A DNA stretch of 64,000 bases from Macrostomum lignano (lineage: Eukaryota). The notes under the pieces are model-generated. The model was given only the letters and a program-made list of their open reading frames with translations. It made no database searches and was not told the origin of the DNA. Where the stretch lies: NCBI GenBank assembly GCA_002269645.1, contig NIVC01002964.1, forward strand, positions 1 through 64,000, written 5' to 3'. Numbering within the stretch: the stretch's first letter is position 1; each line of letters opens with the position of its first letter. Positions 54,505-64,000 of this stretch are shown one piece after another. Made by a program: the position numbers and the translations under genes.

Positions 54505-57500
54505 ATGCGTCTGACGGTGCTGCTTCTGCTCTCCGTTGTGGTGCTTCTGGCTCTCAATAGCGATGTTAGCGACGCCCGAAGATCGAAGCCGTGAGTATAC
54601 TCGTAGACCGAATTAGCTTTGCCAGTTACACTACTTAAAGCAGGCTAGTGTCTCAACTTGCTTGGATCAAGTTTGCTCATGTCGGCTTTCGCGAATAAAT
54701 TTTCAGTCGCTGGGCCAGACGATGTTTTCGAAAGCTCGGAAAGACGGTGAAGCGTCTGAAAAAGCTGGCAAAGATCAGGAAGATCCGCGCTAGGAGGGCC
54801 AAAAGGTCCTGGGCAAAGCGCATGGTCGCATGTGAGTGCAGTCCCTAATGTATCTGTGCAGTGCATTGTCTATGGAACAAACTGTAACAAGCGAATAATT
54901 CCCGGCTCGATGCTCGACTTTCAGCCATCAAAAAGTGCGGTCGGAGGCGCTGCGGAAGGCGGCAGCGATGCGTCGTTCGGCTATCCAGGAGGAAGATTGG
55001 CCGAATCTCCCGCCGAATCGCCCGGTTACGACGCCGCTACCGCAAGAAGAAGGCCAAGATCAATCGAAAGTTTCGAACTGCCATTCGCCGCAGCTCGAAA
55101 CGAGTGAAAACGGCGGCCGGTCGCAAAGCGCTCTCCAGCAAAAAGTCCAAGGCCAGAAAGGTTGTCATCAAGAGGAAGAAAAAGCTTCGCAGGCGAACCA
55201 GAAAACGACTGGTATCCCTGAAGCGGAAATTGCGCCGGGCTCGACGAGGGTCGAAGAGGTGCGTGTCCAGGAGACGCCGCAGCTCGCGAAGGAGACGTGG
55301 TGAGTATTCACTTTGTCGGCTGTATGAAAATACGGTGCAGTGTATGCGGCCCTATTCATAAAAACATCGCTTCTACTTCCGATCCTACAGGCGTGCGGTG
55401 CGGCCGAAGACGCTGCAGCATTCGTCAGCGATGCGTCGCCCGACGATCCAGAAGACGAATCCGACGAATCCGCCGCCGAATCTCCAAGCTGGGACGATCG
55501 TATCGCAAGAAGCGGGCTAAAATTAGCCGCAAGTTGCGCGCCGCCATTCGCCGCAGCTCTCGACGCGTCAAATCGCTGGCCGCATGCCAAAGGCTCTCCA
55601 AGAAGCGATCCAAGATCAGAAGGGCAGCCAATAAGCGAGTAAAGAAAGTTCGCAGGCGTTTTAGAAAGCGACTGGTATCATTGAGACGCCGACTGAGAAG
55701 AGAACGAAGAGGATCAAGACGTTGCGTGTCTCGAAGGAGAAGTCGCGGTAAGCCATGGAATCTTTTTCGAGTAATAGACTAAAGTCACACACACACACAC
55801 ACACACATATATAAATATATATATATTTGCTCCTAAAGGTGTTCAATGTGGCCGAAGACGCTGCGGAAGACGTCAGCGATGCATTGCCCGACTATCGAGC
55901 AGAAGAATCCGCCGAATCCGAAACCTATTCTCCAAGGTAAGACGATCCTATCGAAAGAGACAGGCCAAAATCAGCCGAAAATTCCGCGCCGCCATTCGCC
56001 GGTATTCGCGATCGGTAAAGTCAGCAGCAGCACGTCAAAAACAAGCCAAAAAGAGGGCTAAGGCCAGAAAAATTGTCCGCAAGCGAACTAGAAAGCTTCG
56101 AAATCAAACTAAAAGAAGACTGCGATCTCTGAAGCGCAAATTGAGTAGAGCTCGGCGACAATCAAGAAGGTGCGTTTCACGAAGACTAATTAGATCCAGA
56201 AAAAGACGCTCCTTGAAACGCCGTGCCAACCAAAGAAGACGCTCAGCGAGAAGACGTGCCAACCGAAAGAGACGTGGCAGCAAGAGACGATCGAGGAGAA
56301 GCCGAAGACGTGCCAACCGAAAGAGACGTGGCAGCAAGAGACGATCGAGGAGAAGCCGAAGACGTGCCAACCGAAAGAGACGTGGCAGCAAGAGACGATC
56401 TAGGAGAAGCCGAAGACGTGCCAACCGAAAGAGACGTGGCAGCAAGAGACGATCTAGGAGAAGCCGAAGACGTGCCACCCGAAGAAGTCGAAGAGCGAGA
56501 AGACGCGCCAACCGAAAGAGACGTGGCAGCAAGAGACGATCTAGGAGAAGCCGAAGACGTGCCACCCGAAGAAGTCGAAGAGCGAGAAGACGCGCCAACC
56601 GAAAGAGACGTGGCAGCAAGAGACGACCTAGAAGAAGAAGACGTGCGACCCGAAGAAGTCGAAGAGCGAGAAGACGCGCCAACCGAAAGAGACGTGGCAG
56701 TAGGAGACGATCTAGAAGAAGCAGAAAACGTGCCACTCGAAGAAGTCGAAGAGCGAGAAGACGAGCCAACCGAAAGAGACGTGGCAGCAAGAGACGATCT
56801 AGGAGGAGCCGAAGACGTGCCACCCGAAGAAGTCGAAGAGCGAGAAGACGCGCCAACCGAAAGAGACGTGGCAGCAAGAGACGATCGAGGAGAAGCCGAA
56901 GACGTGCCACCCGAAGAAGTCGAAGAGCGAGAAGACGCGCCAACCGAAAGAGACGTGGCAGCAAGAGACGACCTAGAAGAAGAAGACGTGCGACCCGAAG
57001 AAGTCGAAGAGCGAGAAGACGCGTCAACCGAAAGAGACGTGGCAGCAAGAGACGATCTAGAAGAAGCAGAAAACGTGCCACTCGAAGAAGTCGAAGAGCG
57101 AGAAGACGCGCCAACCGAAAGAGACGTGGCAGCAAGAGACGATCGAGGAGAAGCCGAAGACGTGCCACCCGAAGAAGTCGAAGAGCGAGAAGACGCGCCA
57201 ACCGAAAGAGACGTGGCAGCAAGAGACGATCGAGGAGAAGCCGAAGACGTGCCAACCGAAAGAGACGTGGCAGCAAGAGACGATCGAGGAGAAGCCGAAG
57301 ACGTGCCACCCGAAGAAGTCGAAGAGCGAGAAGACGCGCCAACCGAAAGAGACGTGGCAGCAAGAGACGATCGAGGAGAAGCCGAAGACGTGCCACCCGA
57401 AGAAGTCGAAGAGCGAGAAGACGCGCCAACCGAAAGAGACGTGGCAGCAAGAGACGATCTAGGAGAAGCCGAAGACGTGCCACCCGAAGAAGTCGAAGAG

Positions 57501-63500: not shown

Positions 63501-64000
63501 AGATCTTGAGAAGATACAAAAAGATCAAAAAAGCCTACAGAAAGATGTTGAAGCGAGCAGTTGTTTCCTACTACAAACGGAGGGTTAATGTCGTGAGATC
63601 ATTGAAGAAACGGCTAAGAAAGTTCAAGCGGAGACCAAGAAGCTTCAGAAGACGCTACACACGCCGAGCCATCTGCGTTGCAGTAAATCCATGCCGGAGA
63701 AAGCGTTGTAGTCGAGGGTTTATCTGCCGGGTGCGAAAGATCAAAGCAAAAAGTGGCCGAACCAGATCTGTCGCTCGATGCGAGAAGAAAGCCAGTAAGT
63801 ACTCGTACTTTTTAATAACTTTAAATTTTCTGTCAAAAAGTCATGGATTTTTTGCAACTTTCTCAGCCTATATACAGACCTACAAAGAGTAAAGCATCAA
63901 ATTTCAGACAAGTGCAGCAAGGTGAACTGTTCCAAGGGCAAGCGATGCATCGTCAGGCGGGTGTCGACTCGTACTTTCAAAGGTTTCCGCTGGTTTGCCA
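54505..64000 (+). CDS. Very large secreted Arg/Lys-rich protein with follistatin-N-like Cys modules, a protamine-like repeat and two SUEL lectin domains; runs off the window
   Basis: Coding exons 54505-54590, 54707-54831, 54925-55299, 55391-55747, 55839-59387, 59461-59685, 59818-60273, 60367-60474, 60555-60671, 60827-61033, 61197-61646, 61745-61840, 61925-62800, 62889-63794, 63908-64000 (8026 nt, ~2675 codons, open). Signal peptide MRLTVLLLLSVVVLLALNSDVSDA. All introns are GT-AG. Confidence 0.88.
56240..59160 (+). repeat. Coding tandem repeat, 87-bp unit with a 54-bp sub-unit (ANRKRRGSKRRSRRSRRR + ATRRSRRARRR)
   Basis: Direct reading of the DNA and of ORF 56141-59404. Confidence 0.95.
59838..60096 (+). 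other. SUEL / rhamnose-binding lectin domain 1
   Basis: ACEHSSISIRCPKG...FYGRTNKTVC...C...CQGRRSC...[21 protein letters not shown]; 8 Cys with YGR and DPC..TxKY motifs. Confidence 0.9.
61214..61475 (+). other. SUEL / rhamnose-binding lectin domain 2
   Basis: SCEHGSSSLRCTSG...FYGRTSGSVC...C...CQGKSSC...[21 protein letters not shown]. Confidence 0.9.

Follow-up and report, generated by a model that had tools for sequence, protein, structure and literature searches.

A Macrostomum lignano gene encoding a putatively secreted, extremely basic giant protein with four-cysteine knots, predicted helical stalks and two SUEL lectin domains

Which kind of protein is encoded by the gene that occupies the right end of positions 1 to 64,000 of contig NIVC01002964.1 of the flatworm Macrostomum lignano (assembly GCA_002269645.1; this whole stretch of 64,000 nucleotides is hereafter called the window), and what could such a protein be used for? 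A preliminary description of this locus reported a string of follistatin-N-like (FOLN-like) cysteine knots, some of which would carry long basic helical stalks, twice tipped by a SUEL lectin. The present analysis indicates that the gene product is rather likely to be a giant, secreted, hyper-cationic extracellular protein with clasped helical stalks, acting as a multivalent polycation-plus-lectin cross-linker of secreted material. Temporary adhesion of flatworms is a leading model for reversible wet glues, and the cohesive Lys/Arg regions of the proteins involved have been called enigmatic (PMC8621496).

Three-frame translation and inspection of splice sites revealed a gene of 15 exons on the forward strand, extending from 54505 to beyond 64000 in M. 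lignano. All its introns are GT-AG and the joined reading frame comprises 2,675 codons devoid of any stop. The window holds the first 9.5 kb of the gene and its end cuts exon 15, so that the lengths given here are lower bounds (at least 2,675 amino acids, aa, for the protein). From exon 3 onward, the length of each exon is divisible by three and the exons are of phase 1-1. Exons of this kind are the classic signature of shuffled extracellular modules. The span initially assigned to the feature (54925-64000) does lie within the gene, but 54925 is the start of exon 3; the true start is at 54505, with the exon of the signal peptide and a second basic exon preceding. The signal peptide, the identity of the gene and a giant disordered Arg repeat had also been overlooked. 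The exons and their contents are listed below; the structural models were obtained with AlphaFold2 (AF2), whose local confidence is the predicted local distance difference test (pLDDT), and P0073, P0074 and P0075 designate three paralogous proteins described further on.

54505..54590, forward strand: exon 1, start codon and putative signal peptide MRLTVLLLLSVVVLLALNSDVSDA (the ATG is the first one past an in-frame stop, the core is hydrophobic and a GT donor follows).
54707..54831, forward strand: exon 2, basic amphipathic segment with a single Cys (C35).
54925..55299, forward strand: exon 3, knot 1 (CGRRRCGRRQRC ... KRC) with a 96-aa insertion predicted as a helical hairpin (AF2, pLDDT 89.7).
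55391..55747, forward strand: exon 4, knot 2 with predicted hairpin, 68% identity to exon 3, additional mid-helix Cys (C261).
55839..56215, forward strand: 5′ part of exon 5, knot 3 with predicted hairpin, 62% identity to exon 3.
55839..59387, forward strand: whole of exon 5, including the Arg-rich tandem repeat at 56199..59328 (Tandem Repeats Finder, TRF).
59461..59685, forward strand: exon 6, C1-C3 of knot 4 and predicted N-terminal stalk helix of lectin module 1 (AF2 of a paralogous module).
59818..60273, forward strand: exon 7, SUEL lectin 1 (8 Cys; Pfam PF02140, E = 2.8e-23), predicted C-terminal stalk helix and closing Cys (GRC).
60367..60474, forward strand: exon 8, short knot 5, C3-C4 gap of 16 aa.
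60555..60671, forward strand: exon 9, short knot 6, gap of 20 aa.
60827..61033, forward strand: exon 10, C1-C3 of knot 7 and predicted N-terminal stalk helix of lectin module 2.
61197..61646, forward strand: exon 11, SUEL lectin 2 (Pfam, E = 5.8e-23), predicted C-terminal stalk helix and closing Cys (ARC).
61745..61840, forward strand: exon 12, short knot 8, gap of 13 aa.
61925..62800, forward strand: exon 13, two knots (9 and 10) whose basic insertions, of 127 and 128 aa, are predicted to be helical (homology to P0073 and P0074).
62889..63794, forward strand: exon 14, knot 11, whose insertion spans 248 aa, then short knot 12 with a gap of 17 aa.
63908..64000, forward strand: exon 15, interrupted by the end of the window, with the beginning of knot 13 (CSKVNCSKGKRC; collinear with P0075).

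Just upstream of the gene, a 35-bp tandem repeat (54000-54483; 13.9 copies, 97% matches) ends 22 bp before the ATG and is presumed to belong to the promoter or to the 5′ untranslated region. Within intron 4 (55770-55830), which separates modules 2 and 3, a (CA)n microsatellite is followed by a (TA)n one.

The encoded protein is made of 40% Arg and 11% Lys (51% K+R), which gives a net charge of about +1336, and only 14 Asp and Glu are found among the 1,618 residues located outside the Arg repeat. This repeat, delimited within exon 5 by TRF and unit counts, represents about 1,050 Cys-free aa (58% Arg) and includes about 30 copies of an 87-bp unit encoding 29 aa (ANRKRRGSKRRSRRSRRRATRRSRRARRR), besides a variant of 54 bp (18 aa). 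It follows the closing Cys (C4) of knot 3 and is thus located outside any C3-C4 loop. Two competing open reading frames (ORFs), a Leu-rich one on the minus strand (56104-59160; 1,018 aa) and a Glu/Asp-rich one in the +3 frame, were both rejected as mirror artefacts of the repeat. The protein has 69 Cys: 39 in 13 C-x4-C-x5-C motifs, 12 that close these motifs, 16 in the two SUEL domains and two extra ones.

The C-x4-C-x5-C motifs (C1 to C3) open all the modules. Their number, 13, is to be compared with an expectation of 0.125 and a maximum of three in 2,000 shuffles of the non-repeat protein; elsewhere in the window, the six frames contain such motifs only as minisatellite artefacts. A fourth Cys closes 12 of the 12 complete motifs, as had been proposed at first, the 13th being cut by the window end. 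This closing Cys is mostly found in the context [A/R/K]-R-C-V-x-R, and V/I-x-R recurs directly past C3. A Gly located two or three residues past C2 is nearly invariant (at least 90%) in the alignment of short modules and missing in several other knots of the window. According to what separates C3 from C4, the 12 complete modules are: (i) four short modules (exons 8, 9 and 12 and second module of exon 14) with gaps of 13, 16, 17 and 20 aa, (ii) six long modules with gaps of 96, 96, 96, 127, 128 and 248 aa, and (iii) two lectin modules (exons 6+7 and exons 10+11) whose gap consists of a basic segment, a SUEL domain and another basic segment. The short gaps agree with the 13-20 aa or so of the preliminary description, which had set the long ones at about 90-230 aa, a range that falls short of the 96-248 aa found here. 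Between the C4 of one knot and the C1 of the following one, the linkers measure 4-15 aa, with the exception of knot 3, after which the Arg array is located. The two Cys that stand outside this four-Cys scheme are C35 (54725, exon 2) and C261 (55586, exon 4, in the middle of a helix of module 2); they may be paired together or serve in cross-links between molecules.

Do these knots belong to a known family? Their Cys pattern recalls that of an EGF or follistatin-N module in its N-terminal half: in the FOLN type, the spacing is C1-x4-C2-x2-G-x2-C3, followed by a hairpin to C4, and this spacing of the Cys is kept in the 13 motifs out of 13. The membership of the FOLN family that had been put forward was not supported, however. 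Pfam returned no family at E <= 10 for the knots, whether natural short modules were used or modules with their insertions excised, and neither single-sequence nor profile searches of the PDB with the short knots retrieved any chain at E <= 10. Aligned by hhalign, a profile of 11 natural short modules (four of the window and seven of P0075) and a FOLN profile made of seven segments of human follistatin, FSTL1, FSTL3, SPARC and hevin gave a probability of 65% (P = 6e-5); this match extends from C1 to C3+6 (19 columns) and should be taken as a lead only. Furthermore, the C4-x-C5 motif was not found in the knots, where V-x-R-R comes after C4 and no other Cys occurs before the C1 of the next knot, 4-15 aa further, and no Kazal domain was matched by Pfam beside them. 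Since the profile test failed and both the C-x-C motif and the Kazal partner are missing, the knots should not be filed as FOLN.

The identity of the two lectin domains is much clearer. Both pass the Pfam threshold of PF02140 (SUEL_Lectin; 82.5 and 81.5 bits for a threshold of 31.4), so that the arrangement proposed at first for exons 6+7 and 10+11, a SUEL domain between two basic segments in the gap of a knot, was recovered in both modules. In a sequence search of the PDB, the domain of exon 11 matches SUL-I (5H4S, E = 5.5e-66) and CSL3 (2ZX0, E = 2.7e-35); all its eight Cys align with those of these two lectins and the FYGRT, GDPC and KYL/KYM motifs are present. A word-indexed homologue search with exons 6-12 retrieved only ordinary SUEL lectins (from Hydra, fish, amphioxus and others). 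The resemblance of the lectin domain to amphioxus sequences pointed at first to a cephalochordate source, a reading discarded in view of further evidence. On these sequence matches, the two domains are genuine and ordinary members of the SUEL / rhamnose-binding lectin family. Each lectin module is split over two exons, one for the knot and the N-terminal stalk and the other for the SUEL domain, the C-terminal stalk and the closing Cys: a phase-1 intron is located directly upstream of each SUEL exon (59686-59817 and 61034-61196) and none downstream of the SUEL domain.

Relatives of the knot-bearing part were searched exhaustively by phmmer among 1.84 billion cluster representatives, using as a query the continuous window translation of exon 12, the in-frame intron and exon 13. 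Exactly two proteins were found at E < 1e-3, P0073 (2,640 aa, 49% identity) and P0074 (1,223 aa, 42% identity). Together with P0075 (2,245 aa), a cluster mate of P0074, they are UniRef entries from M. lignano named "SUEL-type lectin domain-containing protein". The relatives are therefore confined to Macrostomum in the libraries searched. A word-indexed search with exons 13-15 gave no match, its candidate list being swamped by low-complexity words. With its 14 knots built on this same framework, P0075 is collinear with the protein of the window; its gaps are of 59+SUEL, 16, 20, ..., 13, 127, 88, 331, 18, 126 and 63 aa, followed by Cys-rich CPxGY repeats. P0073 starts with a knot-helix-SUEL-helix arrangement and harbors downstream VWD, TIL, VWA and five EGF_CA domains and an fn2 domain. 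By collinearity with these paralogues, the part of the gene located beyond the window probably encodes more knots, with insertions of about 126 and about 63 aa, Cys-rich repeats of the CPxGY type and possibly VWD-C8-TIL, VWA and EGF-Ca domains.

What do the long insertions look like? The AF2 model of the exon-3 module, computed from an alignment of exon 3 with two paralogous exons, has a mean pLDDT of 89.7 and a predicted template modelling score (pTM) of 0.67. It includes strands 2-4, 7-9 and 13-18, helices 21-57 and 63-107 and strand 109-114, with C3 (residue 15) and C4 (residue 112) on adjacent paired strands that flank the helical hairpin, which is the topology foreseen in the preliminary description. 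A Foldseek comparison of this model with the PDB retrieved antiparallel helical hairpins only (LSD1 tower, MacA hairpin, insertion of RNAP beta′, designed hairpins), none of them significant. The lectin module was modelled on P0074 (residues about 105-320), exons 6, 7, 10 and 11 of the window being partial rows of the alignment. The model (pLDDT 78) consists of helix 15-61, SUEL fold 66-162 and helix 167-210, which would correspond to a lectin head on a helical stalk, as anticipated; its SUEL fold matches 5H4S, the Lec domain of latrophilin and 2ZX0 at a probability of 1.0, this match being that of the paralogue and not of the window sequence. From these models, the insertions are predicted to fold back as antiparallel helical hairpins of about 5-9 nm or longer, clasped by the knot at their base, and the lectin domains to sit at the tips of stalks.

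It is unlikely, in our opinion, that the basic insertions are instead intrinsically disordered polycation loops stapled by the knots, in which case AF2 would be over-confident and the protein would be a former of polyelectrolytes or coacervates devoid of rigid stalks. Such loops would suit the net charge of +52 to +125 per module and the shallow alignments used by AF2 (3 and 6 rows), as well as the four stalk arms located beside the SUEL domains, whose amphipathic moment is individually non-significant (z = -0.5 to 1.4); the Arg repeat is certainly of low complexity. They fit poorly with the pLDDT of 90-98 along both helices and the pTM of the exon-3 model, and with the composition of the long insertions, which are 30-40% hydrophobic and nearly devoid of Pro and Gly, and whose hydrophobic moment is highest at 100 degrees (z = 2.3-7.3 compared to shuffles). 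Furthermore, the insertion lengths and the Cys framework are kept between paralogues that are only 42-49% identical. A crude score of hydrophobic mirror symmetry places the best centre near the midpoint in six of the six long insertions, above the 95% null in only two of them, and the centre found for exon 3 agrees with the turn of the AF2 model.

With linkers of only 4-15 aa between knots, a comb geometry, or the bottle-brush one suggested at first, is reasonable. In P0075 (residues 1151-1540), the counterpart of exon 14 carries a TNKASETKQKTK tandem repeat inserted about 70 aa past C3, at a place where exon 14 of the window (62889-63794) has an Arg/Ser/Gly-rich stretch ending with GAGSFLWGR. 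Positions in loops or at tips therefore seem to be hot spots for further insertion. Since this repeat of the paralogue is located about 70 aa past C3, compared to a mirror centre near the midpoint, a simple two-helix hairpin is doubtful for the 248-aa insertion of exon 14, whose topology is uncertain.

Is the protein actually made and secreted? An unnamed product of 1,639 aa (199.7 kDa, pI 12.48) was listed by Wunderer et al. (2019) among the proteins of adhesive footprints (PMC6410801, Dataset S2, sheet footprints_Trypsin_intact_1), with a Pfam score of 143.8 for galactose-binding lectin, which we take as two SUEL domains. All five tryptic peptides of this entry are found exactly in the window protein, each preceded by K or R: two in exon 7 (IDILSGFYGR and a 17-aa peptide), two in exon 11 (CTSGSTIDVISAFYGR and a 15-aa peptide) and one in exon 14 (GAGSFLWGR). 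None of them is present in P0073-P0075. From these five exact matches, we conclude that the window comes from M. lignano or a near-identical relative, that transcription and translation of the gene occur, with splicing as modelled across exons 7-14, and that its product is found in what the worms deposit on glass. Peptides of P0073 (for example CQLASSVVSSYAK) occur in the same footprint sheet, where the entry for this protein has 3,863 aa and a pI of 12.1. The footprint list (PMC6410801, Dataset S2) also includes several other uncharacterised proteins of pI 11-12 with VWA or hemicentin-like and SUEL domains, and some peptides of its VWA proteins resemble the VWA region of P0075. These SUEL proteins are not discussed in the main text of PMC6410801.

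How could this protein work? The nearest analogue for which experiments exist is the Lys/Arg-rich cohesive glue protein Mlig-ap1, whose KR regions exceed 3,600 aa and have a pI above 14, and which also contains a C-type lectin, vWD-C8-TIL and 17 EGF-Ca domains (PMC6410801; PMC8621496; PMC9229212). In M. lignano, heparin and other sulfated glycans block attachment and strip Mlig-ap1 from footprints; release is prevented when free Lys/Arg or a cationic peptide is present. The mode of action that we propose is modelled on the one proposed for Mlig-ap1. The cationic stalks and the Arg brush would bind polyanions (sulfated glycans, glycocalyx, conditioned surfaces) and the SUEL heads would bind glycans of the Gal/Rha type; together, stalks, brush and heads would generate cohesive, charge-reversible networks in the material deposited on the substrate. 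Secretion and Lys/Arg-rich regions of extreme pI, two features of ap1-type proteins, are both found here (signal peptide, 51% K+R, net charge of +1336). The window stops ahead of any core comparable to that of Mlig-ap1 and its lectins are of the SUEL type; VWD, TIL, VWA and five EGF_CA domains are seen in the paralogue P0073. More tentatively, and going further than this gene, the basic regions of macrostomid glue or mucus proteins could represent a new class of structural modules of the extracellular space, made of an EGF-half-like four-Cys clasp and a rigid polycationic stalk that hosts SUEL domains or repeats at its tip; knots occurring every 4-15 residues would then generate a charged comb, the assembly and disassembly of which polyanions would switch, as a basis of reversible adhesion.

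Several observations weigh against a clasped-stalk cross-linker of this kind. Besides the shallow alignments already mentioned, a module with a charge of +52 to +57 may need counter-ions for folding. Double RNA interference (RNAi) against ap1 and ap2 abolishes adhesive vesicles and both proteins have been called major components of the glue, so that a third major vesicle protein would hardly find a place. Neither attachment nor release is affected by glucose, galactose or peanut agglutinin (PNA), which argues against an essential Gal-lectin step in adhesion. Lastly, the footprint sample also holds vitellogenin-like, mitochondrial and other cellular proteins (PMC6410801); since it is contaminated by cellular and yolk proteins, presence in footprints is no proof of an origin in the adhesive organ.

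Taken together, the RNAi of ap1 and ap2, the inefficiency of galactose and PNA and the contamination of the footprints make another glandular origin a serious rival, possible rather than probable in our estimation. The same protein with the same fold would then be produced for body mucus or rhabdites or by frontal or cement glands; its rods would condense polyanionic mucus, swell on release and be co-collected with footprints as worms glide on glass. Rhabdites are classically acidophilic, that is, rich in basic protein. Such an origin is in line with the many non-adhesive proteins of the footprint samples, with the occurrence of several paralogues (P0073 and a VWA-containing protein of pI 11) in the same footprint sheet and with adhesive vesicles already accounted for by ap1 plus ap2, and the portion of the tail data set that was examined contained no peptide of this gene. 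It does not explain why the combination of polycation and lectin with the VWD-C8-TIL/EGF domains of a paralogue mirrors Mlig-ap1, which is a protein of the adhesive organ.

The basic residues themselves raise another question, as the protein contains 217 R-x-[KR]-R motifs, 44 of which are located outside the Arg repeat. They would fit a pro-protein cut by furin-type convertases into cationic peptides, or else a defence molecule whose SUEL heads recognise microbial glycans and whose Arg helices are membrane-active or agglutinating. In plants, the alpha-hairpinins, which are basic helical hairpins stapled by disulfides, are antimicrobial, and antibacterial rhamnose-binding lectins have been reported from fish and bivalves. 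We find both versions quite improbable: were every site cut, next to nothing of the Arg repeat would survive, peptides from distant exons were assigned to a single protein in the deposited material, and the string of knots, together with exons of phase 1-1 and with the VWD, VWA and EGF-Ca matrix domains found in the paralogues, speaks in favour of a large extracellular protein of structural type.

Returning to a structural, cross-linking protein, its analysis indicates that at least one family of hyper-cationic secreted proteins of Macrostomum is not featureless: it carries predicted disulfide-clasped helical hairpins with predicted lectin tips, is translated and is found in footprints. It further draws attention to a group of footprint proteins that had gone unnoticed in published data, and it defines discrete units for expression, namely a knot of 30 aa, a stalk of 110 aa and a lectin stalk of 210 aa, with which the interplay between polycation, glycan and polyanionic release factor can be probed. 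If the predicted topology is true, the gene would offer an unusual example of an EGF-like mini-knot with a large domain inserted into the tip of its beta hairpin.

The remainder of the window carries other elements. A multi-exon gene located at 23900-39400 on the forward strand encodes PRP8 (pre-mRNA-processing factor 8; Pfam PROCN, U6-snRNA_bdg and PRP8_domainIV); several of its introns are occupied by long minisatellite arrays (about 24.5-25.2, 26.6-27.7 and 31.8-32.3 kb) that generate long spurious ORFs on both strands. A Helitron-like element with an interrupted reading frame lies at 3300-9900, also on the forward strand. An ORF upstream of its domains (4335-4904) encodes an OTU-protease-like IPGDGNCFFYAV motif and has no Pfam match at 1e-3. 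Its domains are as follows.

5693-6412, forward strand: Helitron_like_N.
7869-8468, forward strand: PIF1 helicase.
9150-9875, forward strand: Pif1_2B/UvrD_C.

Two very large minisatellite blocks occupy 45500-50400, with an extreme strand asymmetry (GC skew of -0.75 at 48-50 kb); they generate repeat "ORFs" of 500-700 aa on both strands and no gene was recognised there.

How does the protein compare with known systems? The FOLN/EGF N-terminal sub-domain of follistatin, SPARC, FSTL1 and agrin shares with the window knots the C-x4-C-x2-G-x2-C pattern, the beta hairpin leading to a fourth Cys and the arrangement in tandem arrays with short linkers. In contrast, the knots are devoid of the C5-C6 loop of EGF, are overwhelmingly made of Arg and Lys and have insertions of 96-248 aa at the tip of the hairpin. 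The two lectin domains have the 8 Cys and the YGR, DPC and KY[LM] motifs of SUEL / rhamnose-binding lectin proteins (SUL-I, CSL3, Lec of latrophilin). These proteins carry tandem lectin arrays or a lectin at the N-terminus of a receptor, whereas each lectin of the window gene is a single domain located between two basic segments, predicted to be helical, within a four-Cys knot. Rigid projecting antiparallel two-helix hairpins are likewise found in plant alpha-hairpinins, in the LSD1 tower and in the MacA hairpin, which are structural analogies only; in hairpinins the disulfides are within the helices (CX3C), whereas in the window modules a separate beta mini-knot is predicted to clasp the base.

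Among secreted proteins of temporary adhesion, SUEL-type lectin domains are known in the cohesive protein Sfp1 of sea stars and in basal-disc-specific transcripts of Hydra. Both combine this galactose-binding type of lectin with vWD, C8 and EGF domains, and neither has hyper-cationic modules of the knot or stalk type. Their lineages are unrelated, and their sequence kinship with the window protein is limited to the lectin domain. Our literature search did not retrieve any paper linking Macrostomum with SUEL lectins, nor any match to the transcript identifiers of a paralogue, and, as far as the literature searched shows, a Cys-clasped helical-stalk module with a domain inserted at its tip has not been described earlier.

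The closest parallel is Mlig-ap1. It belongs to the same species, it is giant and secreted, it combines extreme Lys/Arg contents with a lectin and it is found in footprint material; the likeness extends, through P0073, to VWD-(C8)-TIL and Ca-binding EGF domains. Nevertheless, the two genes are separate, the lectin is of the C type in Mlig-ap1 and of the SUEL type here, and the published repeat peptides of Mlig-ap1, SRKPRRKNRKSRKP and KNNKRRVRKARKNN, are absent from the window protein. Overall, the logic of associating polycation, lectin and matrix domains in a flatworm secretion is already known from Mlig-ap1 and ap3, which are cohesive proteins of duo-gland adhesive organs. What differs is the organization of the basic regions: the KR/GRK regions of ap1 and ap3 were described as low-complexity repeats of "enigmatic" function (PMC8621496), whereas those of the present gene are predicted to be Cys-clasped helical modules carried by phase 1-1 exons.

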